In this document: positions 25,173-63,892 of the stretch, in pieces
Layout of the letters: every line of letters begins with the position of its first letter
Numbering within the stretch: position 1 is the stretch's first letter
DNA from: Diadema antillarum
Taxonomy: Eukaryota
DNA: 64,000 nucleotides
Direction: 5' to 3'
Assembly (NCBI RefSeq): GCF_040938485.1
Contig: NW_027271112.1
Location: 1-64,000 of the forward strand
The notes under the pieces: model-generated
Seen by the model: the letters and a program-made list of their open reading frames with translations, nothing else
The model's database searches: none
Told to the model about the DNA's origin: nothing
Made by a program: the position numbers and the translations under genes

Positions 25173-26280
25173 AATGTAGAGTCTAGGTCTAATTAAGATG
25201 TTACAGTCTCTGATAAGAAACAGGTTTGATTGTCATAGACTGTTTCCCAAATGCAGGTACATGTAGTAATATTCAGCTATTTCAATGCAATGCCTTGTTA
25301 ACAAATACATGTAGATTTATATTCATGTGAATGATAATTCAATTTCTACATGAGACATACCAAGTGCTAAACATAATATCTTGCATCAGTAAAATGTGTA
25401 AATGAAGAGACAATTTGAATATGCATCAAATACGAACAGCAGCATTTTTTGACATTCTTTGATCCTGCATAGGCCTACCATTTTGTTTTATGTTTAATAT
25501 AAATAGAGCAAAATAATTTCAACTTCAGTTTTGTTGGCTGATTTTTTTTTTCTTCTCAAAATTTTTAAAAGTTTGTAAAGTTGTATCTTGTGCCATGATG
25601 TTTGATTTTAATCAAAAGTTCTTAATTTCTTTCTTTTCTTTCAGATGACTGGTGCCATGTAGTAGCGAAGAACTGGACTGTCTCAGAAAAGAAAAGGAAA
25701 AGTACAGGGTCGTGTACATCACCAACGGATGTGAATACAATGGTAATGTAGAGTCTAGGTCTAATTAAGATGTTAAAGTCTCTGATAATAAACAAGTTTG
25801 ATTGTCGTAGACTCTTTCCCAAATGCAATTAGTAATATTCAGCTTTTTCAAAGCAATGCCTTGTTTACAAGGACATGCAGATTTATTCATGTGAATAATA
25901 ATTTAAATTCTACATGAGACTTACTAAGTGCTAGACATAAGATCTTGCATCATTAAAATATGTAAAAGGCGAGACAATTTGAATATGCATCAAAAACAGC
26001 AGTATTTTTTTGACATTCTTTGATCCTGTATACCGTTTTGTTTTATGTTTAATATAAATAGAGCAAAATAATTTCAACTACAGTTTAGTTGGCTGATTTC
26101 TTTTTCTCAAAATGAAAGTTGTATCTTGTATCATGATGTTTGATTTTAATTGAAAGTTCTTAATTTCTGTCTTTTCTTTCAGATGACTGATGCCATGCAG
26201 TAGCGAAGAGCTGGACTGTTTCAGAGAAGAAGAAAAAAGTACAGCATCGTGCTGATCATCAAGGAAAGTGAATACAATGG
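25173..26280 (+). repeat. Diverged tandem duplication (~540-570 bp unit) containing an exon-like cassette
   Basis: AATGTAGAGTCTAGGTCTAATTAAGATGTT at 25173 and 25745. Colinear homology continues to GTGAATACAATGG at 25731 and 26268. Confidence 0.9.
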
Positions 26281-27029
26281 CTTAGGAAAGAAGACAATCT
26301 ACAGATAGGATAGAAGGGAGAAATTGGGATGAAGGGCGACAACATAAGGACGGTATATCTACAGTGAAATGTGATTGTAAAGTGGAAACATGAAAGGAGA
26401 TCCTAAGATTGAAGGTGAAAACAAGGCATTCCATTCTGTGATGTCGTAATTACAATTTTGCTACACTTTAATAACACTACAGAGAGACATTTATATCAAG
26501 GAAAGCTTCATGTGGATATGGAATGTTAGATTTTTTAAAGTGTTCATTGGTATGTATTTCATGATAATAAATCTTGAAGGTTTTGTGTGGTAATCATAAC
26601 CTTGTGATAAATCTTGATAGATTTCTAAGTGCACATTGGCAATATTTAGATGATGCTGTAATCAGATTAAGTTCTGTTCTCCTTTATTCTTTTATTTATT
26701 ATTTTGTTGTCTTCAACCCACTTTGAATGTGTCACGTATGATTCTTATAAACATGGGAACATGCACTCCATGTAAATGATAGGACTTATAACAAATTGAC
26801 ATAATTATTCAACCATCACTAGACAGTTCTGTTATAAGATGTTCTTTATCTAACTAAAATTGTAAATTATGATACGTGTATGTTCCCATGCAAACTCACA
26901 ACAAAATACAGAAATTTGATTTCTTTTAATAATAATTCATTATGTCTCTAAATTTACAATTAAAGAAAGTGATTGCAATGAGGATGTCAAACATCGTATA
27001 TTAAAATAATAGATTATTCATTGGTCTCC

Positions 27030-27185
27030 ATCCGTAGTAACGCACGCAACAGCAGTGTGCAGTTTGTAGGCTGCTGTGAAAAAAAAAATCACACGCAGCC
27101 CAAGCAGGATTCGAACCACGACCTCTGGATTACTGGACCAGCGTCATAACCACTAGACCACCGGAGTGCCCTGGCGCTACCTTTA
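27030..27185 (-). mobile_element. tRNA-derived SINE head (pseudo-tRNA, Thr(AGT)-like loop)
   Basis: Minus-strand A box TGGTCTAGTGG (27150-27160) and B box GGTTCGAATCC (27107-27117). The acceptor stem pairs poorly, so this is not called as a tRNA gene. Confidence 0.7.
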
Positions 27186-28179
27186 CACATGAATAATTAA
27201 GTATAGAAGGGCTTGGGGGCGCTTCGAAGTTTACTGCTCTTATTAAATATGTACATGTCATTTGCAACTCAACTAAAGATGATTAAACACACTGAAATTC
27301 TTACTTTAAATGATATTCATAATCTGTTTTTTTTTTTCTTTAATAGCTTGGGATGTACACTTTATACACTGTATTGGTCTACATTTCGCCTACAATATGG
27401 AATTCTTTACTTCGAGACGTTTGTTTTTAACAAACAAAAAATTAAGAGTCCTTTAAAGGTGCTGTAAAACAGTGGTGTTTGTTTGTTTGTTTGTTTTTTG
27501 GTGGGGGGGGGGGGGAGTCAAATTAGCCTTGGCCCCTCTCCGCCGTCTTTTTTTTTTCCTTTAGCTGCATATTTTTTAGTCATCACATGAAAATTCGTCT
27601 GCATCCACCCCGTAGTTTTGCTGATGACCTTTCTTTTTAATTATTTTAGCCACACACAATTTTGGCTGAATTTCCCCAACCCTCTTGTGAATTTGCTAGT
27701 ACATGTACTAAAACACATTCTCAGAATGTGTTTATAGTACTGGTGGATTAAGGATTCACAGGGAGGGGGGGGGGGGGGGTCGGCCAAAATTTCTCTTTTC
27801 TCATATGTAACAAGCCTTCGGGGCGAAAGGCTGATATTATGGGCTTTCTACACACATTTTTAGATGCTAATTATTGGTTAACATGAGCATGATCATTTAT
27901 GTTGTGATTAATTTGTTTCCTTATATATGTATGACTTCTATTAGAGACTTAATTGGCTTGGCACTCCTTACATCGACCTATTTTAGACACCCATTTCCCT
28001 CTCTCTCTCGTGCTTTTTCTCTACTGTCCTGTGAATAGTGTAACTACATGTACATGCAGTACCTCTTCTCTTTTGTATGATACACATCAAGTTTTTATCT
28101 GAGCATATGGGTGTTGCAGCACTCTCAAGCTTCATGCATATGCAGCAACATCTTTGTGTGGTCATATACATACATGTAG

Positions 28180-28323
28180 TTATGCTTGATATATTAATTT
28201 GAGAATGTTATTCTTTCTCTTGTATATGTTCCGTCCGCACTCTATAGATGTTTATGCTTGATATATTAATTTGAGAATGTTATTCTTTCTCTTGTATATG
28301 TTCCGTCCGCACTCTATAGATGT
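28180..28323. repeat. Near-perfect 2 x 72-bp tandem duplication
   Basis: TTATGCTTGATATATTAATTTGAG..CACTCTATAGATGT at 28180 and 28252. Confidence 0.95.
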
Positions 28324-30623
28324 AAATGTACGATGTAAGATTTGGTGTGCATGTTCGAACTGTGTTCCTCTTTTTGTGAACACACAAGAACTGATATAAT
28401 AATGAACTTGAATTACACATATTCTTGAATCTTGATTCCATCTCCATTTGCCATTAGATATGTATTGATTTATGGAGCTCTTCCACAATTGTTATCCTTC
28501 CCATTGTCATTACTCATCTCTGAATAATTCAAATTTGATATTCTATTGAGGACCTATGTTTCTTCGATTACATAATGTACCTCTTCAATATATTGCTGCA
28601 AAAGGCATAATAAAACATGACCATTATTATATATTTAAAATGAAGCTTGAAATTCTGATAGTGTCGATATTCATGTATTTTTAGGAGTTTATCAGTTTCG
28701 AAGAGTGCATGCAGGATGAGTTTATGTTTTTATATGATCAGGTGCAGCTATCATAGAATCTGTTGAGCAGGAAAGAGAAAGATGGAAAATGAGGAATTAT
28801 GAGTGAATTCGCATGCGAGCCAAATGACAATAATGACACTGATAAAAATTGTGACAAAGTAAATGTCACAAATATGTGGAATAATAAGAAATAAAGAAAT
28901 TAATATATTATTTCAGAGAAAGAAATAACAGAGTGCATGCATGAGTATGAAAGATGAGTAAATACGAGTAATTATTATTGACTGGCACGTCTTTTTCCCA
29001 AGATTTAGCGGTATCCTTCATCTTAGAACAAACATTCATAATTATTATGAAAGAAGTGAACTGAATTTGAATTAAAAATAATGTGAAAAAATGAAAAAGT
29101 AAGTTAATTAAGTAAAAAAAAACAGTAAAAAGTAAAAAATATGAAACACAGTATACCGAATACATGTATTACCAAATGATAGATGTCCAAATGCAAAAGT
29201 GTTAAATAATAATATATCCACAAAAAAAAGGGGGGGGCAAAGAAATCTTTGGAACGATCAACCACAGCTATAATAACAATACATGCGTGTACTAAATGAA
29301 GATGAAAACAATGACAACACTCTTTTTAGAACAATTAAGAGAAACTGGCTTGTATTATCATCTTGATTATCACTAAATGTATTGTAATTATCACAACAAT
29401 CATTACATGACAATTAATTTCAATTAATAAGGTTATTGTTGATAAGCAGGTATAGCCCTAATAGTATTTGTATATAAACACATACGAAAATGAAATAGCG
29501 ACGGTTCGTAAATACACGCGTATTGCACGTTACCTATTGTACAGGCCCTACAGCGCGGGTCTCACGAACCGGCGTAATACAACTTACGTCGGTTCGTGAG
29601 ACCCGCGCTTAAGTACATAACCTATGGTGCGCGCAAGAAACGATGGATTTACGAACCGACGCAGTGAGTTTGAAGACAGAAATATCGTAAATTTTTTGAA
29701 TTCACACTAAAATTACACTATGGATAGGAAGAACAACTTCCACTCTCATCACCCTGTCAAAATTTTCACACACAAGACAGGAAAAGTCATTGAAAACGTT
29801 GTCTAAAACTTGTGAGATCTTTAAACGCGATTTTCTCAGAACTGCATTTTCGCTCAAAAACGAAATAGCGTCGGTTCGTGAAAACGCCGACGATATTTGT
29901 ATCCGAGTGCAAACGTTGGGTTATACACTGTTTAACGTAATCTCTCTCTCTCTCTCTTGCTATATGAAAAGTGTCAACCATCTTCCCCAACACTTTACTA
30001 TTTTGAACTTTGTCTTTATGTGTGATCACTGACAAGGTCATTTTTTATTACTGTATTTCTCTGCAATATACGTATTTTCTTATTGCTCTCCCCTCTCTCC
30101 ATCTCTCATGCACTCTCGTTTCTGTGACATTTAAACCGGCGGCTACATTGATACGACCCGACATCGTGCTGACTTATTGTTCTTGACTGTGTATGTCAGC
30201 ATAGCTCGAGTTGCACATGAAACCACACAACAGCCGAGACAAAGACATTCCCACAAGTTATCACTAAGCGCGCTCGTCACTTGATACATATTCACTCTTC
30301 ATGCGGAATGTACATTCAGTTTGGCAAGTCTTCACATTAAGAATGTGTGAACATCCACTGCTGCTGTCATAAATTGAGCTCACTTTTCACTTGTTCATCG
30401 TCTGAATCTACACCGGGACTACTGTTGATCGGGATGTCATATCTTTGCCCTGAAGGTGAAATTCCCTACCCAAGTCTGATTATCACAAGTTTCCGGTTGT
30501 GTATATATCATTCCTGTTCAAGTTGTTGGATATAACATAATGATGAGCGGTTGGTGAAAGTTTGAAACTACACTTTGTATGAGCATCGGATAAACGTGTA
30601 TGTTATGTAGAATGTGATCTCTA

Positions 30624-45515: not shown

Positions 45516-47833
45516 AAATCTATTGCTGTTTTGGGGATGGAACTTGGGGTGGTCCTTCAGACCCCAGAGAGCTCCATCTCTGGTGCCCATTGGAGTTTCC
45601 CTGATGCTGGTGTGGGCATCTCACCAGCTTTTGGTTCACGACAGCAAGGTTCTCTGAGGAATGTCTACTGAAATGACCATCTTCCCCACATCTGTAGTCG
45701 GAAGTTTGGGTTTGACATCTGGGATGGTGTACCCTCAGCGCCAGACACTGCTTCGAAGAATTTAGTCTTCATTGAGGGAGGTGCTGGGGTGGAAGCTTGC
45801 ATCTTCATGTGGGCCTTGTGCTTGGCCAGGCAGTCTTCAATGCCCCTGGATGTTGCGATGTTTGCATCTATGTGGTTTTGGGTAACTGTTTGGAGACTCA
45901 TCCCCTTTACTGCATCCCTGTGACCTTGGGCAACTGCTTGGAGATTCCTCCTCTTTCCTGGTCTCTTTTGATTCTTATTTGCTGCGTCCTTGTACCATTG
46001 AATGATTCTAATAAGGCAAGTGAAACTAGGTGAGTTCTTCAGTAGTTCTTGAAGTCAAAGGCTCATCCATCAAACATGTCATGGATGCATGGACTGTTGC
46101 AGCCTTGTGATATGGTGCTCCCCCTATTCTCATGGCACAACAGAGAGTACTATTCAATTGCAAAGTCCAACAGCTTCTCCTGGTCTTGCTTTACCATGAC
46201 TTGGATTTTGAGCAGGTTCTCATCTTCATTCTCTGTGGATCCAATCAAAGCTTCAAGGGCTTCCACATGCTCCTTGGCAGTGCCCTGTAGATTTTTCAGG
46301 CAGAGATCATGAACTATGTTTGAAACTGATGGTAAGAGTTCCTCTCTGAACCTCCTGTTTTTCAGTCTCATCTGGGCCGGCAGCTGCCCATTTCTGGAGG
46401 TTTCTTAGGTGTGGAGCCTCCCACCCACTCTCTAGTTGAGGTTCTGATCCTGACCAATTATTTCCATCGCCCAGCTACCCAATTTGATGTCAAGGAGAAC
46501 CTGACTTCATTCACTACAACTGCACTCTCTATGCCATCGATGACCTTGCACAAAGAGATCAATATCTCCTCCATATGGATTTCAAAATCATGAGCTACCA
46601 AAAGTATGGCCTTTGTCAACAGTTTGTCCTTTTTACATAGATCCCTAGCTTGGCTACAAATTCTAGTCAGCCATGACTGACCATACTATATTTAAACATT
46701 GTCATTGGCTCCTGCAATTAACACGTTTATCAATGATTTTCAATTAACCCTATTAGCACTGAAAGTCAAGGGACAAAGGAAATTTTCCTATGATGCAATG
46801 AAACATTAACAGACCTACCAAGTCTCATGCATAAGGCTTTTTTTGTTTTTGATGAGAATAAGCCAATATATATTATATGCATGTATATACATGTGTATGC
46901 ATAAGGTCACACAATTCATAGCATAGATACTGAAGTTATAACCTCTCCCAAAAAACTCCCTAAAAAGTTTTCACTTTGCTGTGAAATTATTATTTAGGGA
47001 TCTGTGTTATCAGATAGGCCTGATTATCACAGTACCAACACTAGTTGTAGTTATTTATGGTGTTGGTGTTGCATGCAATTTGTAATGTCCCTGGAACTAT
47101 TTCAGGGAAAATATTTTATGGAATACCTCAAATGCTTTACAGATGAGGGTTTTTATAAGTTCGTAAAAGTTCAGAGCAAATACAAATGAAGTCTTCCAGT
47201 TTCTATGTTACCAGTATGTAGTATGCTGTACTCTTGCTTTCTTTTCTGAAAGACAGTACAAAGCAATTATTTTGACAACTAGTATGGCAATCATGGATTT
47301 ATGTACATCTGAATTGAATTAAAAAAAGAATAGCCATAAGTAATTGTAACCTATATTTCCTACTTGTTGTCCTCTGAACAAAATATTGACCAGTAACATG
47401 CAAATTTGTAATATACAGAGGACAATACATTATGATGCCAGTACTTTTGTTCTTATTGTGCAATCTATTAATGAATGTGTTGTGAGGCATATAAACCAGA
47501 AGAATTGATATTTTTGGCCTGACTGTAGTATGTTTCGACAGATTGTACAAATTTCCCTTGCAGTCATAGCGGTGTGTGATTGCAATTGATATTCATTTGT
47601 GTGTATGTGTATCTGTGTGTGTGTGAAACTGTTACTTGAAGCTTGCACTGGTTGTGATTGACTTTGATAATCACTGGCGCTCATACATGTAATTACTCAT
47701 TGTATTGCCGAATTTTATATGATTTACTATAAACAGGTACATGTATATTAAAATAAATGGTGCTGGTAACTTTCATGTAACGTATAGATTCCGGTAAGTA
47801 AAATTAATCATCTAGTAGACTAGTAGTGAGACA

Positions 47834-47934
47834 TTGCAACTGATTGACAAATTGCCCTACATCGACATAAGTAAGCACTGAATTGATCAGTGTTTTAGTA
47901 GTAGCCATGATAAAAAATCATGGGCGTACATACT
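47834..47934 (-). mobile_element. 5-prime-truncated copy of the same SINE (3-prime body only)
   Basis: TTGCAACTGATTGACAAATTGCCCTACATCGAC..AGTAGTAGCCATGATAAAAAATCATGGG matches 45305-45400. Confidence 0.8.
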
Positions 47935-48246
47935 GTTGATCACTACAGGTGCACAGACAGTTTCAGTTGGTTTGTGTCTGTTCTAAAAGTGGAAATTTCT
48001 TGTATTTTTTCCCCTCAGCCGAGATAAATTTGTGGTACAGGTGTATTTTGATTCTACAGACTCAAAATATAATGTACACTTGTACATGTACATGTATACA
48101 TATAACAAGCAAAAAAACCTGCATGCTTTAATTTTTCCCTAAAATAGCATTTCATGTCTTGCAAAATGCGCTAAAATTTCCATACTGCAAAATTCCCACT
48201 TTTACAGTACATATACTGGTGTATTCATGATGACCTTTATATCTGA

Positions 48247-48434
48247 AATTTTAGTAAATGTAAGGTAACCCTGCTTGTATGCTGTACTGTTTTCAAATGT
48301 TCACTTCAGTCCAGTAATACAGTGTTAAAGATGTCAGCAATTTTAGCAAATGTAAGGTAACTCTGTTTGTATGCTGTACCGGTACTGTTTTCAAATGTTC
48401 ACTTCAGTCCAGTAATACAGTATTAAAGATGTCT
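48247..48434. repeat. Tandem duplication (~92-98 bp unit)
   Basis: AATTTTAGYAAATGTAAGGTAAC..AAAGATGTC twice; copy 2 carries an extra CCGGTA. Confidence 0.92.
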
Positions 48435-49190
48435 GGTACTATTTATGAATAAAAGATAAGCAAGACTGCTTGAGATTTATTACAATGGCTGTGTGGGCTA
48501 TTTCTAAATACTGGCAAGTCCATAACATATTTTTTTGAGTCCAATGTACATGTGCATAGTACTTTCCGTATGAAAGGTGTACACACTTACACTGCTGATG
48601 ATAATACTGCCATAACTATTATCCTTGTCTGATGAAAGATTTCCATGTTAATATTTAAGTGATCCATATTTGATAGAAGTGATCAATGTCAGTACCACAT
48701 TTGTACAGATACACGTACAATATACCATTATACATGTATTAATACATGTACTGAGTACTACAATCTGCTGAAAATACAAGGAGATTCTCTGAATAAGGAA
48801 TGTAACAAGAGTCTTGATTTTCTTCCCCCAAGGGTCAATATTTCTTTGTACATTAATATTCTCAAACCCTGATACAATGTGCAGTGTATGACAAAATTTC
48901 AAGATGACCATGATTTCTCATGTCCCACGGAGTTTGTTGTATTTAAAGAAGAGTCCACAAGACACATGTGGATTGCGTGAATATAGCAATATTAGTTGAA
49001 CACATCAGTGAAAGTTTGGGGAAAATCGGACAATCCATTGAGCAATTATGAATTCTTTAATTTTGGTGCTGCAATCGCATGACATCACATATGGAAAAAG
49101 ATACAATGTATGAAGAAAATATACAGAATATTCCACAAAATTTTTAATGAAAGGTACACATTTGTTTCTTTGACTTCATACTGACATTAA

Positions 49191-49733
49191 AGGACAAGTT
49201 CACCTTCATATATACACTGTATGTGGATTGAGTGAATGCAACAAAATTAGTAGAACACAGTGAAAATTTTGGGAAAATCGGACAATCGGACAAAGTTATG
49301 AGCATCTGCGCAGTCACTGCTCTACTACAGTGTCTGATATCACATGCGTACAACAATATAAGGAAAATAAAAAGAGAATTTCGCAAAACTTCACTTTTTG
49401 AATAAAGTGCACATTTCTTCAACTTGTTGCTGATGTACGTTTAATAAGGGTAATATTATTTCCCCTGCCTTCTGAAAGAGAGCAGTCCGGTATTCTTTTG
49501 TTATGCGACAAAAGTGAAAATATGTTGATTTTTTTAAATATTCTTCTTTATATCATACACATGCGATATCACAAGCTAGAGTAGTCTTTCCACCCAGCCA
49601 TGACTGAGCTGAAACTTCAAGAATTCATAACTTTTGATCGGATAGTCCGATTTTCCTCAAACTCTCAATAATGTGTTCGACTAATATTGCTGCATTCACT
49701 CAACCCACATGCCTATGAAGGTGAAATTGTCCT
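49191..49733. mobile_element. Kolobok-type MITE with intact TTAA TSDs
   Basis: TTAA|AGGACAAGTTCACCTTCATA ... TATGAAGGTGAAATTGTCCT|TTAA (19/20 TIR match). A related fragment lies at ~48945-49100. Confidence 0.85.
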
Positions 49734-52295
49734 TTAAATGTTACGGAACGGGTAATATTACAGGTGCATTTCCCCCTCTTTTCTAGAAGAGGTAAGGCAT
49801 GTGATCTTTCATTATGCTAGAAATGTGAATATATTATACTGTATGTTTAACTTCCCTTATAATTTCTTTGCCATTTTCCATATGTGACATTACAAAATGT
49901 TGTAGTCTTTTCATCCAGCAATGGCTGCATCAACACTAAAAATTTGTAACATTTCAAAAGACTGTCATATATGTTAGCAATATTTCTAAATCTCTCGATT
50001 CACTTATATTTTGGTTCCATTTTCCTTTGTTTGACACTGCTAGTGCATGCAAAAAAACAGTGCAGAAGTGTCCTTCAATGACACTATACATGTAATTATA
50101 TAAGGTGAGCTGGGTATGCATTTTAACAAGTATCAATTCTTTCTTGAGATATTATTCTGAATTTTCAGAGAAAACCTTGTCTATGGAATACTATCACAAG
50201 AAATAAAATTGACACACTATGTACTGATACCGTGTGGATTGTGTGACATTTTAAACAAGTACAATGTATATGTGTAATTGTTTTCTATATTTGTGTCATC
50301 TTAAATTGCAAAATTTTAGAAATACCAAGGATTGCATCTGAATCACCTAAATAATATTTAATATCTTACTTGAGTTTGACAATATGTGTGTTATATTTTT
50401 TCTCCCACCACCTTCCTGATTCAATTGTAACACCCACGATACAAGATGACTTTACATGCAAATTGTATAAGGTAAATTAGTTATCAATATATTTGTTCTC
50501 TCACTTCAGCAGACACAATACATTCATATATCATATGGTTTATATCTTAACTCACAAAGTCAAACATGTATACCTTCATTTTTTAATATAATTATTTCTA
50601 CTTTCTTTAGATTAAATAATGCACACACAGTCTTATCTTTAATGAGCAATGTGCCATCAATTATTGCTAATAAATTCATTGCTGTAATGCTCAATAAAAG
50701 AAAGCATGTAAGCAATAAAAAAAGGGGCAAACATGCATTACACTTAATCAAATGAAAATATGTGTAGCTATTGCAATCAAGTCAACCTGAATGTCAGATA
50801 TCAATTTAACAACATCTAATGTGCAGCGTATTTTACAAACACTTGGTGGAATACTGTTGGAGCCTTGCGGTTAGGAAGACAAGGGCCAATAGAACTGATT
50901 GGGTTCTACTAACAAATGCCATACTTTGGAGGTCTAAAGGTACACCAGCACTCAACATCATAAACACTGACAGCAACTCATTAAGTATATTAACCACTGG
51001 CACAGAATTACTCTCGATAAACATGGCAAGGTATGTCAAGTAAGCATCCTAGTTTTTGCAATATCTCTCAATTTTCTCCATTATCTTTCCAAAATATACA
51101 CTTAGTATTGGAAATATGCATGTGGATGTTACTTTAGACAGTATTTCCTAAAGTTCTTATCATTACTTTCATCACTACTAGGGTCTTCAGAATAACACCC
51201 AATTAGCATATTTTACTACCATACCTTTCTCTAATTAAATATGCTTATCATGGATTTAATGTTATTTGCCTGTCAACAGATGTCATTATCAGCAACAGTG
51301 TTGTTTTCATTCAAGAATGCCCACAAAATACCTGCATATAACAGCAACTCACTTTGTAAGTACAGCCTCAAAATATGCTGCAGACTTTGACGACACACTA
51401 CACATGTACCATTCAAGCAGCCTTAGATGGGGGGCTGGACATTTTACATCAGATGAGTGACTGAGGAATTCAGTTTTGACATACTGTATGGTACATACAG
51501 CTGAACATGTACAGTATTTCACATGAACAGTTACCTGAAATAAATGTTTTTACCCTGTCTTTGATACACCAATACTGAGGTGAAAGAATCCAACACTGCA
51601 GTCAACTTTGCAACAGTCACATCCACTTCATCCTTTGCGGATGAGCTACATGTAATTTTGCTTTAACGTGCATTTCCCATAGACACCTACCCGAGTACAC
51701 TTGGGTCGTCAGCAGGTTAATTTGTATTTCTGCATAGGGTCAAAGTAAATGTTCAAGGTACATATTACAGTTAAGCCTGTGGTGATTATGAAGTCTTATA
51801 TTGACAAAGTTGAAGCTTATGCTGAGTTTCTTGTACTACAGCTGTACTTACAACAGTACATCTTAACATATATATTTTTGGTACATTCCATTTCATTCAA
51901 CAGAGAAGGGAAATATTATTTTTTGTTTGCGGCTGCTTTTTTTTTTTATTGAAAAACTTCCACCACATCAGTGTGATGTCTTGCTGAATGAACATATTTG
52001 GGCAAAGTTTACAAAGTTTAGCAGAATATGTCATAATTTCTTCATAAACTAGACTTTGGAGTACTGTTTCATGCATTCACTCATATTTTAGATCAACCAT
52101 GCATACAGTATTTGTACTCGTAAGTATGCAGGGCCCATGACATCAAAGTCAATTACAGACGATAATTGAAAGGCCTACAAATTGAAGAAAATGCTGTAAT
52201 GGACGTATTTAAGCTCAGCACCATCGATTATCTAATATACATATCGTAATTTAGCAATTCTGCACTTCTGATTTAAACAAATGTAAACAAAAATT

Positions 52296-54160: not shown

Positions 54161-54374
54161 CGGTAAAACAGGATATTATTATATTCGCGGCATGAATTTT
54201 TCACGAATTGGAGCCGACAGCCTTTTTTTGCGGGATGAAATTTTCACAAACAGCAATTGGCATTAAATGCATATAGTGTAGACAAGAACTATCGTGTGCG
54301 TTTTAATTTCGCGAAACTTGGCGCTCGCAAAATTCGCGACAAGAAAGTGCATGCGAACATTCCTCGTTTTACAG
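54161..54374. mobile_element. TA-flanked MITE (family related to 33845-34084)
   Basis: TA|CGGTAAAAC ... GTTTTACAG|TA with TTCGCG motifs. Confidence 0.7.
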
Positions 54375-54853
54375 TAGGGCCTATCTATGATTTCTTTTTA
54401 AAACCATTGATGTAATACTACTAATTCACTGCAACTCATATCATTTAACCTACTTCCGGACAAGAATTAACGCCGTGCAATGCCACGCTTGTCTTTGCTT
54501 AACAGCATGCTCCATGACCAAGTTACTGAGATGTGTTAATGACATGTTGCTATTGAAACCAGGAACGGTATGACCAAAAAGCAACATTTTTGGATCATTA
54601 CTGCCGTTGGCTCCTAAACCCCTGCCTTGGATTCCCCGAAAATTGATGAAGCAAACAAGAAGCAGTTCAAATATGTATAAATTATGTGCTGGCTAGAAAG
54701 CACGATACTGACCCTTGATGATTGAGCAACTGACATATTGTTACTTTGTTAATGTTGATTATTCACATTCATGTAAACTGTAGTTGTACAGCTCGAGCTT
54801 AGGTACAAAGGGAATATTGTACATCACATACATGTATGAAAGTAGCATATGGT

Positions 54854-60494: not shown

Positions 60495-61819
60495 GTAAGT
60501 GTTATGGTCCTCTTCATCCCGATGTCTCCACCACACGAACTTGCCGTAGAACTGACAATGTTACCTACTAAAGCTACAGTAACATTGCGGCTCACACTGC
60601 CGATAAATGTTTTGTGTGCTATCGTATGGCCGAGAGGTCTCTCATGAGTGAGTGGTGGCTATCTAGGCTCTTGCAGCAGCAGAGGCAGAGCCTATATGAA
60701 CCAGTTCAGTTCATTGCATTGATCATCATGATCATGTTGATAGGTCTTCACCACATTGGGTTCTAGTCAATGCATGTCAGGAGTTCTAAACAGTTAGATC
60801 CTACAGAAATACCAGTTTGCAGTAGAAAGAGCTAGCAGAGCTAGTCGAGCTCTCGGTAGTAGCCAACCAAGACAGAGGCAGAGCAAAGCGATGCAGTCCA
60901 GTGCAGCAGTACAGTAGTGGCGCTACATCCATCCATCTGTCTAGCTAATTCGATTGATTGAAATGCACAAGAATAAAGTAACTCAATGGATCTAAACAAC
61001 CTGCATGGCACCAAGGTTCGACCTCGCGTACAAAATTTGACCGTGCGTAAAAGCATAGATTCTAACGTTAAACAATTAAATTACCGGTAGGCCCTAGACC
61101 GGCTACAGCTATCTACTAGTAATATACTAGATATTTTCTATAATCTAACGTAAGAAATCTGAAAATCATAATTTCAAAAATGAAATGAGGTTCGTTATTC
61201 CGAAAGTTAGTAGTACTGGAACAGTGGAAGTGAAATATGATTTGCTAAGCTATTCAACAGAAATGATGTGTAGCACAGTGTGCATTGGCATTGCAGACCT
61301 GACTGAGCGATTCCCAATCTATTGAAACACAAGTCATTGAAATGCTCCTACCCTGTTGTCATATACTTCAACTTCACTGGTAAGTCTTCAAATTTAAGAA
61401 ATTTTTCGATTTTAAGTTGATATTTGTCCGCTACTACCCTGTCATGATCCTGAAGGCTGCAGTCCGCAGCCCCATTACGCTATGCGTATGGCCCGATGGG
61501 ACTGCTGGTCGCAGTTAGTCATCATAGCCATGCATCATTCATGGGGAGTCCATGACATGGCATTGGCATAGCAATTTCTGCATCTCCCATCTGGAATGTT
61601 CAGTATAGTGCAGATATAAAGTTTATAGAAGTTCCTTGAAGTGTCTGCATGTATCCTCAACTACACTGTTAGTCATAAATGCTAGATTTATCAGAATATA
61701 ACCACACGTCAAGATTAGGAAAAAAAAAAGTACCCTCCATACAACAAAGCTCTGATTCAAGCATTTTCATACACTCATTTCAGATGTAGAATTAGATGAG
61801 ATCCTTTCATTTTCCACAG

Positions 61820-61927: not shown

Positions 61928-63892
61928 GTGAGTATGATGTATTGCACGTTGATGACCCATTCATTTGCACTCTTTACCATGTATGCAGATATATTGTTAT
62001 ATTTCATTTTTTTTCTTTTTGTCTAAAAGAAATTCCTATCAAATTATGTGCAATTTTATACATGTATGACAAAAATGTTAAATGGTTAATCAAAGCTGCT
62101 TACTATTTGTGGTATTTTGAGCACATTCAAGATATTGTAATCTCCAAATTCAGAGACAGTAGGGTCTCCATACACATAGAAGTTCTAGAACTGTAACTCT
62201 GCATATTCATTATGGGACCTGCTCAACGTTGATGATACTTGTCGATGATAATTAAGTTCATAGTAGCCATATTGCATGATGATACTGATGCAGTACCGGT
62301 ACTTTTAAAGAAGTTCAGACTTGAACGGCATCATCAGTTGCAATATTAGTAAATGAATTGAAGGACTGTCGGCTCTAAAACAACTGGAAAAGCCATATAA
62401 AATCAGATCTCATTGGAGAAAGAATATGCTGTAAATTTAAGTGATATGTGGTTCTGACTTTTCCAAGTTATCACCAATTTTGTAGTGCTAAGGTTATATG
62501 CTGTGTTACAATATTGACCTACATGTACACTGTATGCATACAATTTGTAGTTGCATGCTTGCTTGCATGGTGAAGATGGCTTTTATAAGTAGAGTCAGTA
62601 GAATCTGACAACCAGAATGGTTGAAGTTTATTAAAATTGACATCCAATATTGGTTTTAATGCAATTGGACATTCAATATTGGTTACAATCATATTATATT
62701 GGTTATAATAGTACACCAGCACATGTTATGAGGATGAGAGAATGAATATAATATTTTGATAATTCAGGAGTGCCGATGAACGGGTCACTTTCTGTACTAA
62801 AAAACTCCTGGCAAAGTGGCATGTATTTAAGATGTCCATTTTCAGTGCTAACATGCTTAAACCCAAAGCCCCCCCCCCCCCTCCCTGCAAACCTGCCAAA
62901 CTTTTAAAAAGTCTTGTTTATAGATAATAGATTGCATTTTGAAAGCTTCAATGGAAATTTATGGTAATCTACCTGTAAGTGTTTATTATAAAATAAACAA
63001 GTTAGGCAAAAGTTATGCATTCTTCTTGGACCTTAGAACATCATGAAGTAAGAAATCATCTCTGTAAAGTTGTAAGCCCCTCCATATCTAAAGTTAGCAA
63101 GATTAGTGCAAGTTTCAAAGATGACAACAGGATTAATAGTTTAGAGCACAAGTGAGCTAAACCTGCTCGTGGTGCTTGCAGATCAGAGCTACCACATTTG
63201 CATTTTTGATTTGTCATTTGTTGACCCAAACATCTTTCCTTTTTAATGTTTTAAAGTCATCACGATATGAATGAGAACCAGGCAGCATAGACTCAGTGAC
63301 ATCACTATCAGTTTTAGTTGTTACCTTTGCTATGTTTTTAAAGTTACATCGTAAATATTATAGTCATTCAGATGGAATGACAGAGTGAGTGTGGGTTATG
63401 GCAGAGTACTAAAGTGTAGAACGGGTAGCCAATGTGATCATGAGGTTACAGTAATAGAACTTTTTACATACCAGTAACCACTTTCACCATTTTTCATTTT
63501 TACCAGCACTGGTAATCCAGTCAAAGTCCCCCTTTCTTTGAGTAGCTGCCATTCCCAGGCACACATTTTTTTTTCTTTAAGTTTTTATTACAATATGCGA
63601 AACCCAGATTGAATTGGTGGTCAGCATTTCTTGTACGCATTATATTGTATTGCAATGTGTAGTGGCATACCTGTGGTGATTGTCTGTGAAGTCTGTGTCA
63701 CTGTTGTAAAAATGTGGTATAGTGGTATCATAGTTGAATTTGTTCATCTTATATGGCTGACTATTTGAAGATGAGGAATTTTAGAGAGAAAAAAAAATTG
63801 ATGCACATTACTCTAGATTCATGTAAATAATTGGTAACAATTGGTAACAATTTTTTTTTTTTTTTTTTTTTTGGGGGGGGGGGGGGGATATG

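Follow-up and report, generated by a model that had tools for sequence, protein, structure and literature searches.

Three palindromic octamers, TACATGTA, TAGGCCTA and TACCGGTA, occur in the genome of Diadema antillarum far more often than expected, and we consider it probable (roughly three chances in four) that they and related words of 7, 9 and 10 letters are the excision scars of TA-duplicating cut-and-paste transposons of the Tc1/mariner superfamily. At both ends of a Tc1/mariner element, cleavage of the non-transferred strand by the transposase falls 2-3 nt within the element, so that the donor flanks keep TA together with the first letters of the element and are then sealed by end-joining. 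According to the model, a plain TA would be converted into TA, two or three end letters, their inverted partner and a second TA, and the words generated would include TACATGTA, TACANTGTA, TACWGTA, TAGGCCTA, TAGGSCCTA and TACCGGTA. The excision origin put forward in the original prediction is well supported for the CA..TG class, where it is matched by an active-looking Tc1-type element and by MITEs, and for the GG..CC and CC..GG classes it is only plausible.

The material comprised positions 1-64,000 of contig C224 in the 1.75-Gb assembly (the whole stretch of DNA presented here, referred to as the window), the next 200 kb of the same contig and 18 further loci. The 264 kb of contig C224 served as the sample for word counts and repeat-copy comparisons, and expectations were computed both from base composition and from a first-order Markov (dinucleotide) model. 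In the window TACATGTA, TAGGCCTA and TACCGGTA are found 24, 8 and 6 times, against expectations of 1.97, 0.79 and 0.79 copies (base composition) and 1.87, 0.45 and 0.30 (dinucleotides). The original prediction had put the expectation at about two copies of TACATGTA and one of TAGGCCTA, in agreement with these values, and had placed all eight copies of TAGGCCTA correctly; its list of 14 positions for TACATGTA was incomplete, lacking those at 16881, 21827, 36423, 48089, 50087, 51647, 54829, 55950, 62059 and 62520. The octamers lie in mutually unrelated, mostly non-repetitive contexts in the window, and their excess therefore does not come from a single repeat family.

The same words stand out at larger scale. 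The 264-kb sample holds 79 copies of TACATGTA (7.8 expected), 17 of TAGGCCTA (1.7 expected) and 17 of TACCGGTA (1.1 expected), and the genome as a whole 304,942, 128,068 and 37,587, respectively, with 154,757, 11,461 and 25,268 copies of the corresponding reversed words. Over the dinucleotide expectation these genome-wide counts are excesses of about 6-fold, 11-fold and 5-fold, and TAGGCCTA exceeds its own reversed word 11-fold. The reversed word is a harsh control, given that the reverse of the neutral mixed word TACACCTA is itself 2.2 times commoner than TACACCTA (about 46,000 and about 21,000 copies per strand, respectively). Likewise ATGTACAT, the reverse of TACATGTA, reaches about 2.4 times its own dinucleotide expectation when extrapolated to the genome, and part of the CA-class excess is therefore probably compositional or microsatellite-like. 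With the exception of the microsatellite word TATATATA (169 copies, 6.7 expected), all remaining TA-NNNN-TA words in the 264 kb stay at or below 4.0 times expectation. About 52 scar-like words are present in the 64-kb window, consistent with the high density that had been proposed, and there are possibly up to half a million such words genome-wide, a figure uncorrected for repeats and composition. We also observed a cluster at C1:734284-737012, where at least 13 copies of TAGGCCTA, some overlapping, lie within 3 kb together with TACCGGTA, TACATGTA and 10-mer variants; this may be satellite DNA or a landing site that was used repeatedly.

Enrichment is limited to words whose two halves are mutually inverted, which is the signature of two joined inverted-repeat ends. 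Relative to expectation, the half combinations CA+TG, GG+CC and CC+GG reach 10.2, 9.7 and 15.1 in the 264 kb, and CA+CC, GG+TG, CA+GG, GG+GG and CC+CC reach 0.7, 0.7, 1.8, 0 and 0. Among mixed-half words in the same sample, TACACCTA is present five times where 7.3 are expected and TAGGGGTA and TACCCCTA not at all (3.6 expected); genome-wide, TACACCTA is found 20,891 + 21,125 times, near the approximately 48,000 extrapolated from the dinucleotide expectation of the sample. The longer and shorter relatives are enriched in the 264 kb as well: TACWGTA 3-fold (114 against 38 expected), TACA[AT]TGTA 7-fold, TACA[CG]TGTA 10-fold, and TAGG[CG]CCTA and TACAGCTGTA 18-fold each, with TACACTGTA and its complement amounting to 116,867 copies genome-wide. 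Among the first 50 sites of TAGGNNCCTA, GGG stands on one side in 37, and among the first 50 of TACCNNGGTA, 20 read TACCATGGTA, which suggests that the source elements of the GG and CC classes may have ended in GGG...CCC and CCA...TGG.

Scars also abut. Twelve arrays were found in which scars share one TA; in three of them a scar of the GG or CC class adjoins one from a different class (examples of arrays are given in the table). Slippage is excluded as the origin of the mixed-class arrays. Every scar supplies two fresh TA targets.

Table. Coordinates of the tandem duplication, putative scars, abutting arrays and host transposon in the window.
Feature	Position	Strand	Basis or remark
Left-hand 1.18 kb of the ~7-kb transposon, cut off from the remainder by an inserted retrotransposon	17024..18207	+	L021 350-1506 matches at 97.5%
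Right-hand 5.85 kb of the ~7-kb non-coding TIR transposon that hosts the tandem duplication	24043..29893	+	at least 20 copies, 98-99% identity
TACCAGTA, insertion of 6 bp found only in the window copy of the host element	24464..24471	.	plain TA in 8 other copies
Tandem duplication, ~570-bp unit	25167..26280	+	copy 1 25167-25743, copy 2 25739-26280; 85% identical
TACATGTA in copy 1, 6 bp longer than the TA allele, CA..TG-class scar	25258..25265	.	pairwise alignment; in 9/9 host-element copies
TAGGCCTA in copy 1, 6 bp longer than the TA allele, GG..CC-class scar	25470..25477	.	pairwise alignment; in 9/9 host-element copies
Plain TA in copy 2, paralogous partner of 25258-25265	25830..25831	.	pairwise alignment; host-element copies compared
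Plain TA in copy 2, paralogous partner of 25470-25477	26031..26032	.	pairwise alignment; host-element copies compared
TACATGTACATGTA, two CA-class scars with one common TA	48083..48096	.	
TACCGGTA, CC..GG-class scar; plain TA in the neighbouring tandem copy at 48285-48286	48377..48384	.	copies 87% identical
TACAGTA + TAGGGCCTA, two classes with one common TA	54370..54383	.	
TACCGGTA + TAGGCCCTA (reads TACCGGTA-GGCCCTA), different classes with one common TA	61082..61096	.	
TACATGTA + TACACTGTA with one common TA	62520..62534	.	

The original prediction started from two 6-bp indels, each setting TA against an octamer, between the copies of the tandem duplication at 25173-26280. Realignment (25165-25745 against 25740-26285) reproduces both at the same coordinates, and they make up two of the nine indels that separate the copies. 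The first, at 25258, is adjoined by two substitutions (GG vs AT) and the second, at 25470, by one (C vs T). A further TACATGTA, at 25306, pairs without a gap with GACATGCA of copy 2, from which it differs by substitutions only. The 264-kb sample contains no third copy of the ~570-bp unit; by analogy with other families, the scars at 25258 and 25470 would be derived insertions. We infer that excision made these particular scars, the two in the duplication included.

When all repeat copies in the 264 kb were compared with each other, 36 distinct 6-bp indels emerged, of which five independent ones have the form TA to TA-NNNN-TA, with the cores GGCC, CCGG, CATG (twice) and CAGG; 7-bp indels of the TA-to-scar form are present as well. 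In paralogue alignments, TA is set against TA-NNNN(N)-TA at 25258, 25470, 48377 and C224:96889, 88270 and 245260, with both TA copies kept. Polarity can be read only in families with at least three members, of which there are three cases: TACATGTA at C224:96889 and TACACTGTA at C224:88270, each present in one copy with plain TA in three other family members, and TAGAGCCTA at C224:245260, present in one copy with plain TA in five others. Because the long allele is private and the other members have plain TA, the scar is the derived insertion at TA in all three. Substitutions cluster beside several scars. When contigs from three individuals and one other organism (four runs) were compared with positions 46001-52000 of the window, no scar polymorphism was found, the output being swamped by three high-copy repeats; the unique parts of this region showed SNPs, a few indels and one unplaceable 6-letter gap in an alternative contig (48795-49009). 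At none of the loci examined, a small sample, was one allele seen to carry an element and another a scar.

The tandem duplication lies in a ~7-kb transposon, the boundaries of which were taken from comparison of its copies. It has a 39-bp terminal inverted repeat with ends that start TCGTCGGCG, contains no open reading frame of 90 aa or more, and is flanked by TA around the window copy, the left flanks of other copies not being TA. The number and near-identity of its copies (table) indicate that it spread very recently. Nine scar-like words are present in the right-hand part of the element. All nine aligned copies agree in eight of these words; the remaining one, at 29161, is found in eight copies, the exception being L026, where the alignment is broken by a MITE insertion. 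Since the words are common to the aligned copies, the scars are older than the spread of the transposon, and those at 25258 and 25470 appear to have arisen in its ancestor. It follows from the copying of scars along with amplified repeats that genome-wide word counts exceed the number of events. The insertion that makes TACCAGTA at 24464 is ambiguous: as the inserted AGTACC is identical in five of six positions to the AGTAAC directly after it, either a scar of recent origin or an imperfect tandem duplication of 6 bp could account for it.

Several other insertions were noted in this element. A Ty3/Gypsy LTR retrotransposon at 18208-24042 splits the window copy; it carries an intact 1366-aa pol reading frame on the minus strand (18873-22973) with reverse transcriptase, RNase H and integrase domains, and has 99% identical copies on at least four other contigs. 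The MITE in L026 (L026:6492-7062) is 570 bp long, has AGGACAAGTTCACC ends and a TTAA duplication, and is absent from eight other copies of the ~7-kb transposon, with its empty site at window 29108-29111; this clean filled/empty pair belongs to a TTAA-targeting (Kolobok/T2-like) family with relatives at window 48.9-49.9 kb. A 72-bp tandem duplication (28180-28251) and a 13-bp insertion (25563-25575) are also private to the window copy.

A search of the genome with Pfam DDE_3 (PF13358) returned 150 matches, and in many of these the frame is open over 329-392 aa. At eight loci (L031-L038, for example L031:1087-2985) we found a 1.9-kb Tc1-type element with TA on both sides, CAC...GTG ends and inverted repeats of about 197 bp, of which about ten full copies, 99.8-100% identical, exist genome-wide. 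Its reading frame (L031) is intact, with HTH_Tnp_Tc3_2 and DDE_3 domains. At least 30 loci carry shortened derivatives, about 680 and 276 bp long, that have lost internal sequence; copies of this kind commonly arise when gap repair after excision is interrupted. On sequence evidence, this element looks active and is a good candidate for a current transposon of the urchin. Its CAC ends predict the scars TACATGTA (2+2 letters) and TACACTGTA (3+2), both of which are enriched. The 264 kb also contains about twelve TA-flanked MITEs with CAGT... ends, for which the predicted scars are TACWGTA, TACAGTGTA and TACAGCTGTA, and other Tc1 families have open frames of 352, 392, 329 and 373 aa. L029 and L030, the best DDE_3 matches, have no detectable inverted ends, and no alternative-haplotype contig was found for the one 1.9-kb insertion locus for which it was sought. 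The regions C142:748641-752072 (L031) and C164:1468362-1471793 (L032) are 100% identical over 3432 bp in opposite orientation, flanks included, so that the assembly may contain duplicated or alternative-haplotype contigs. Three tandem arrays were noted on C224, at 203.5-205.5 kb (L014-L015), 212.8-213.5 kb (L015) and 250.3-251.0 kb (L019), with units of about 270, 168 and 195 bp.

The original prediction further held that the dinucleotide classes should match the termini of TA-targeting elements. A match was obtained for the CA..TG class; none was found for GG..CC, and for CC..GG there is only an ambiguous one. No TA-flanked element with GG...CC ends was found in 330 kb, even though TAGGCCTA is the cleanest signal, and in searches for TA-flanked inverted repeats that begin with GG or CC, for recurrent TAGG.../TACC... 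14-mers and for repeat boundaries all matches lay inside tandem arrays or other elements. The sole CC...GG candidate (CCCC...GGGG, C224:186725-187192) can be explained equally well by a duplication of TTA or of TA. A search with the mariner-type transposase profile PF01359 gave no match in this genome, nor in control genomes. It should be noted that the 264-kb sample is 1/6,600 of the genome, so that transposon families of fewer than several thousand copies would escape it; the GG..CC and CC..GG classes may trace back to rare, extinct or unsampled TA-targeting families.

Further candidates were rejected. A ~330-bp MITE with GGCCC ends (L013, C224:190497-190823) is flanked by ATA on both sides instead of TA; it has GGCCCGAATTC ends, and a TA-flanked inverted repeat with CAAATGAAACC ends is nested inside it. 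ISL2EU, considered as a source of the GG class, duplicates AT, not TA (PMC4482050). PIF/Harbinger elements duplicate TWA, and T makes up only 12% at position -1 of TAGGCCTA. A Minos-type footprint, TA with four end letters and TA, would appear as TACACTTA or TACAGTTA, which are present 11 times against 12.5 expected and 15 times against 12.4, respectively.

The missing sources give some room to an alternative in which the CA class alone consists of Tc1-type scars and the GG..CC and CC..GG words come from some other TA-directed insertion, either by another transposon superfamily or by a repair process or nuclease that adds fixed letters. That TAGGCCTA reaches 128,068 copies and yet has no matching family in 330 kb speaks for such a separate process. 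However, the GG and CC words share the architecture of the CA class, take part in the same kind of 6-bp TA indel and share TAs with adjoining CA-class scars; fixed, inverted letters such as theirs point to element ends, and TAGGNNCCTA and TACCNNGGTA behave like ladders derived from such ends. Moreover, ISL2EU is set apart by its AT duplication (PMC4482050), and the flanks exclude a Harbinger-type TWA. We regard a separate process as unlikely. A still more tentative extension of the excision reading is that, among about half a million fixed scars (about one per 4 kb), the GG..CC words, the second commonest class, are the main surviving trace of a TA-targeting family now rare, extinct or undescribed in kind; the odds seem to us somewhat against this.

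Explanations without transposons fare worse. The over-representation of ATGTACAT and TGTACA, the existence of (CATGTA)n-like runs such as that at 48083, and the substitutions-only relationship of TACATGTA at 25306 to its paralogue would all be expected if the octamer excess reflected base composition, microsatellite-like slippage or selection for palindromic protein-binding sites, with the indels incidental. Such causes leave unexplained the repeated clean insertions of 6-7 bp exactly at TA, the lack of enrichment of mixed-half words and the mixed-class abutting arrays, and they do not account for an 11-fold excess of TAGGCCTA over its reverse. The contexts of the octamers are, moreover, unrelated and mostly non-repetitive; we consider these causes very improbable as the main origin of the words. 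The original prediction named as evidence against itself a history in which the octamers are ancestral and the TA alleles are 6-bp deletions through TA..TA microhomology. For the indels at 25258 and 25470 the sample offers no third copy by which to read polarity, but in all three testable families the long allele is private and the rest have TA, and deletion would neither favour CATG, GGCC and CCGG cores nor explain the enrichment of the octamers. This history we think scarcely credible.

The scars inferred here closely resemble the footprints left by Tc1 and Tc3 in C. elegans, where excision with 2-nt 3' overhangs gives TA + CA + TG + TA, that is TACATGTA. In both cases the letters are inserted at TA with both TA copies kept and are the first two of CA...TG ends, and an active-looking Tc1-type transposase with HTH_Tnp_Tc3_2 and DDE_3 domains and CA...TG ends is present in the urchin; here, however, the footprints are fixed genomic features numbering hundreds of thousands rather than products of observed excision. 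More generally, Tc1/mariner footprints consist of the 2-4 nt at the start or end of the element, the canonical footprint of Sleeping Beauty being TACAGTA/TACTGTA (PMC6943129). The same 7-mers are 3-fold over expectation in our sample, where TA-flanked CAGT... elements are common, but they form a minor class, and the dominant scars keep 2+2 or 3+2 end letters, with overhangs unannealed. In rice and other grasses, excisions of Mariner/Stowaway and Harbinger elements have been described as a genome-wide source of small mutations, with substitutions clustered beside excision sites through error-prone repair (PMC5023962). Substitutions cluster beside several scars here too. That study (PMC5023962) used orthologous loci with and without the element in two species, whereas ours concerns an animal genome, uses word statistics and paralogue indels, and identifies a source for one scar class of three. 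A literature search found no published link of these octamers to transposon scars in echinoderms, and although the mechanism of excision is already known, the scale and density of the scars seem to be undescribed.

Excision scars are usually studied experimentally, one locus at a time; here they would have shifted word frequencies five- to tenfold or more. If the reading is correct, the scars preserve a tally of earlier cut-and-paste activity even where the elements themselves are gone, and they steadily supply 6-bp in-frame insertions and new palindromes. Such activity, which leaves no trace in copy number, could then be counted and dated from sequence alone, and the end letters of vanished families could be deduced. 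The scars would also mark a distinct class of 5-8-bp TA insertions in urchin variant calls and gene models, in-frame insertions of two codons included, and motif-discovery and k-mer analyses of this genome will report these palindromes for reasons unconnected with regulation.
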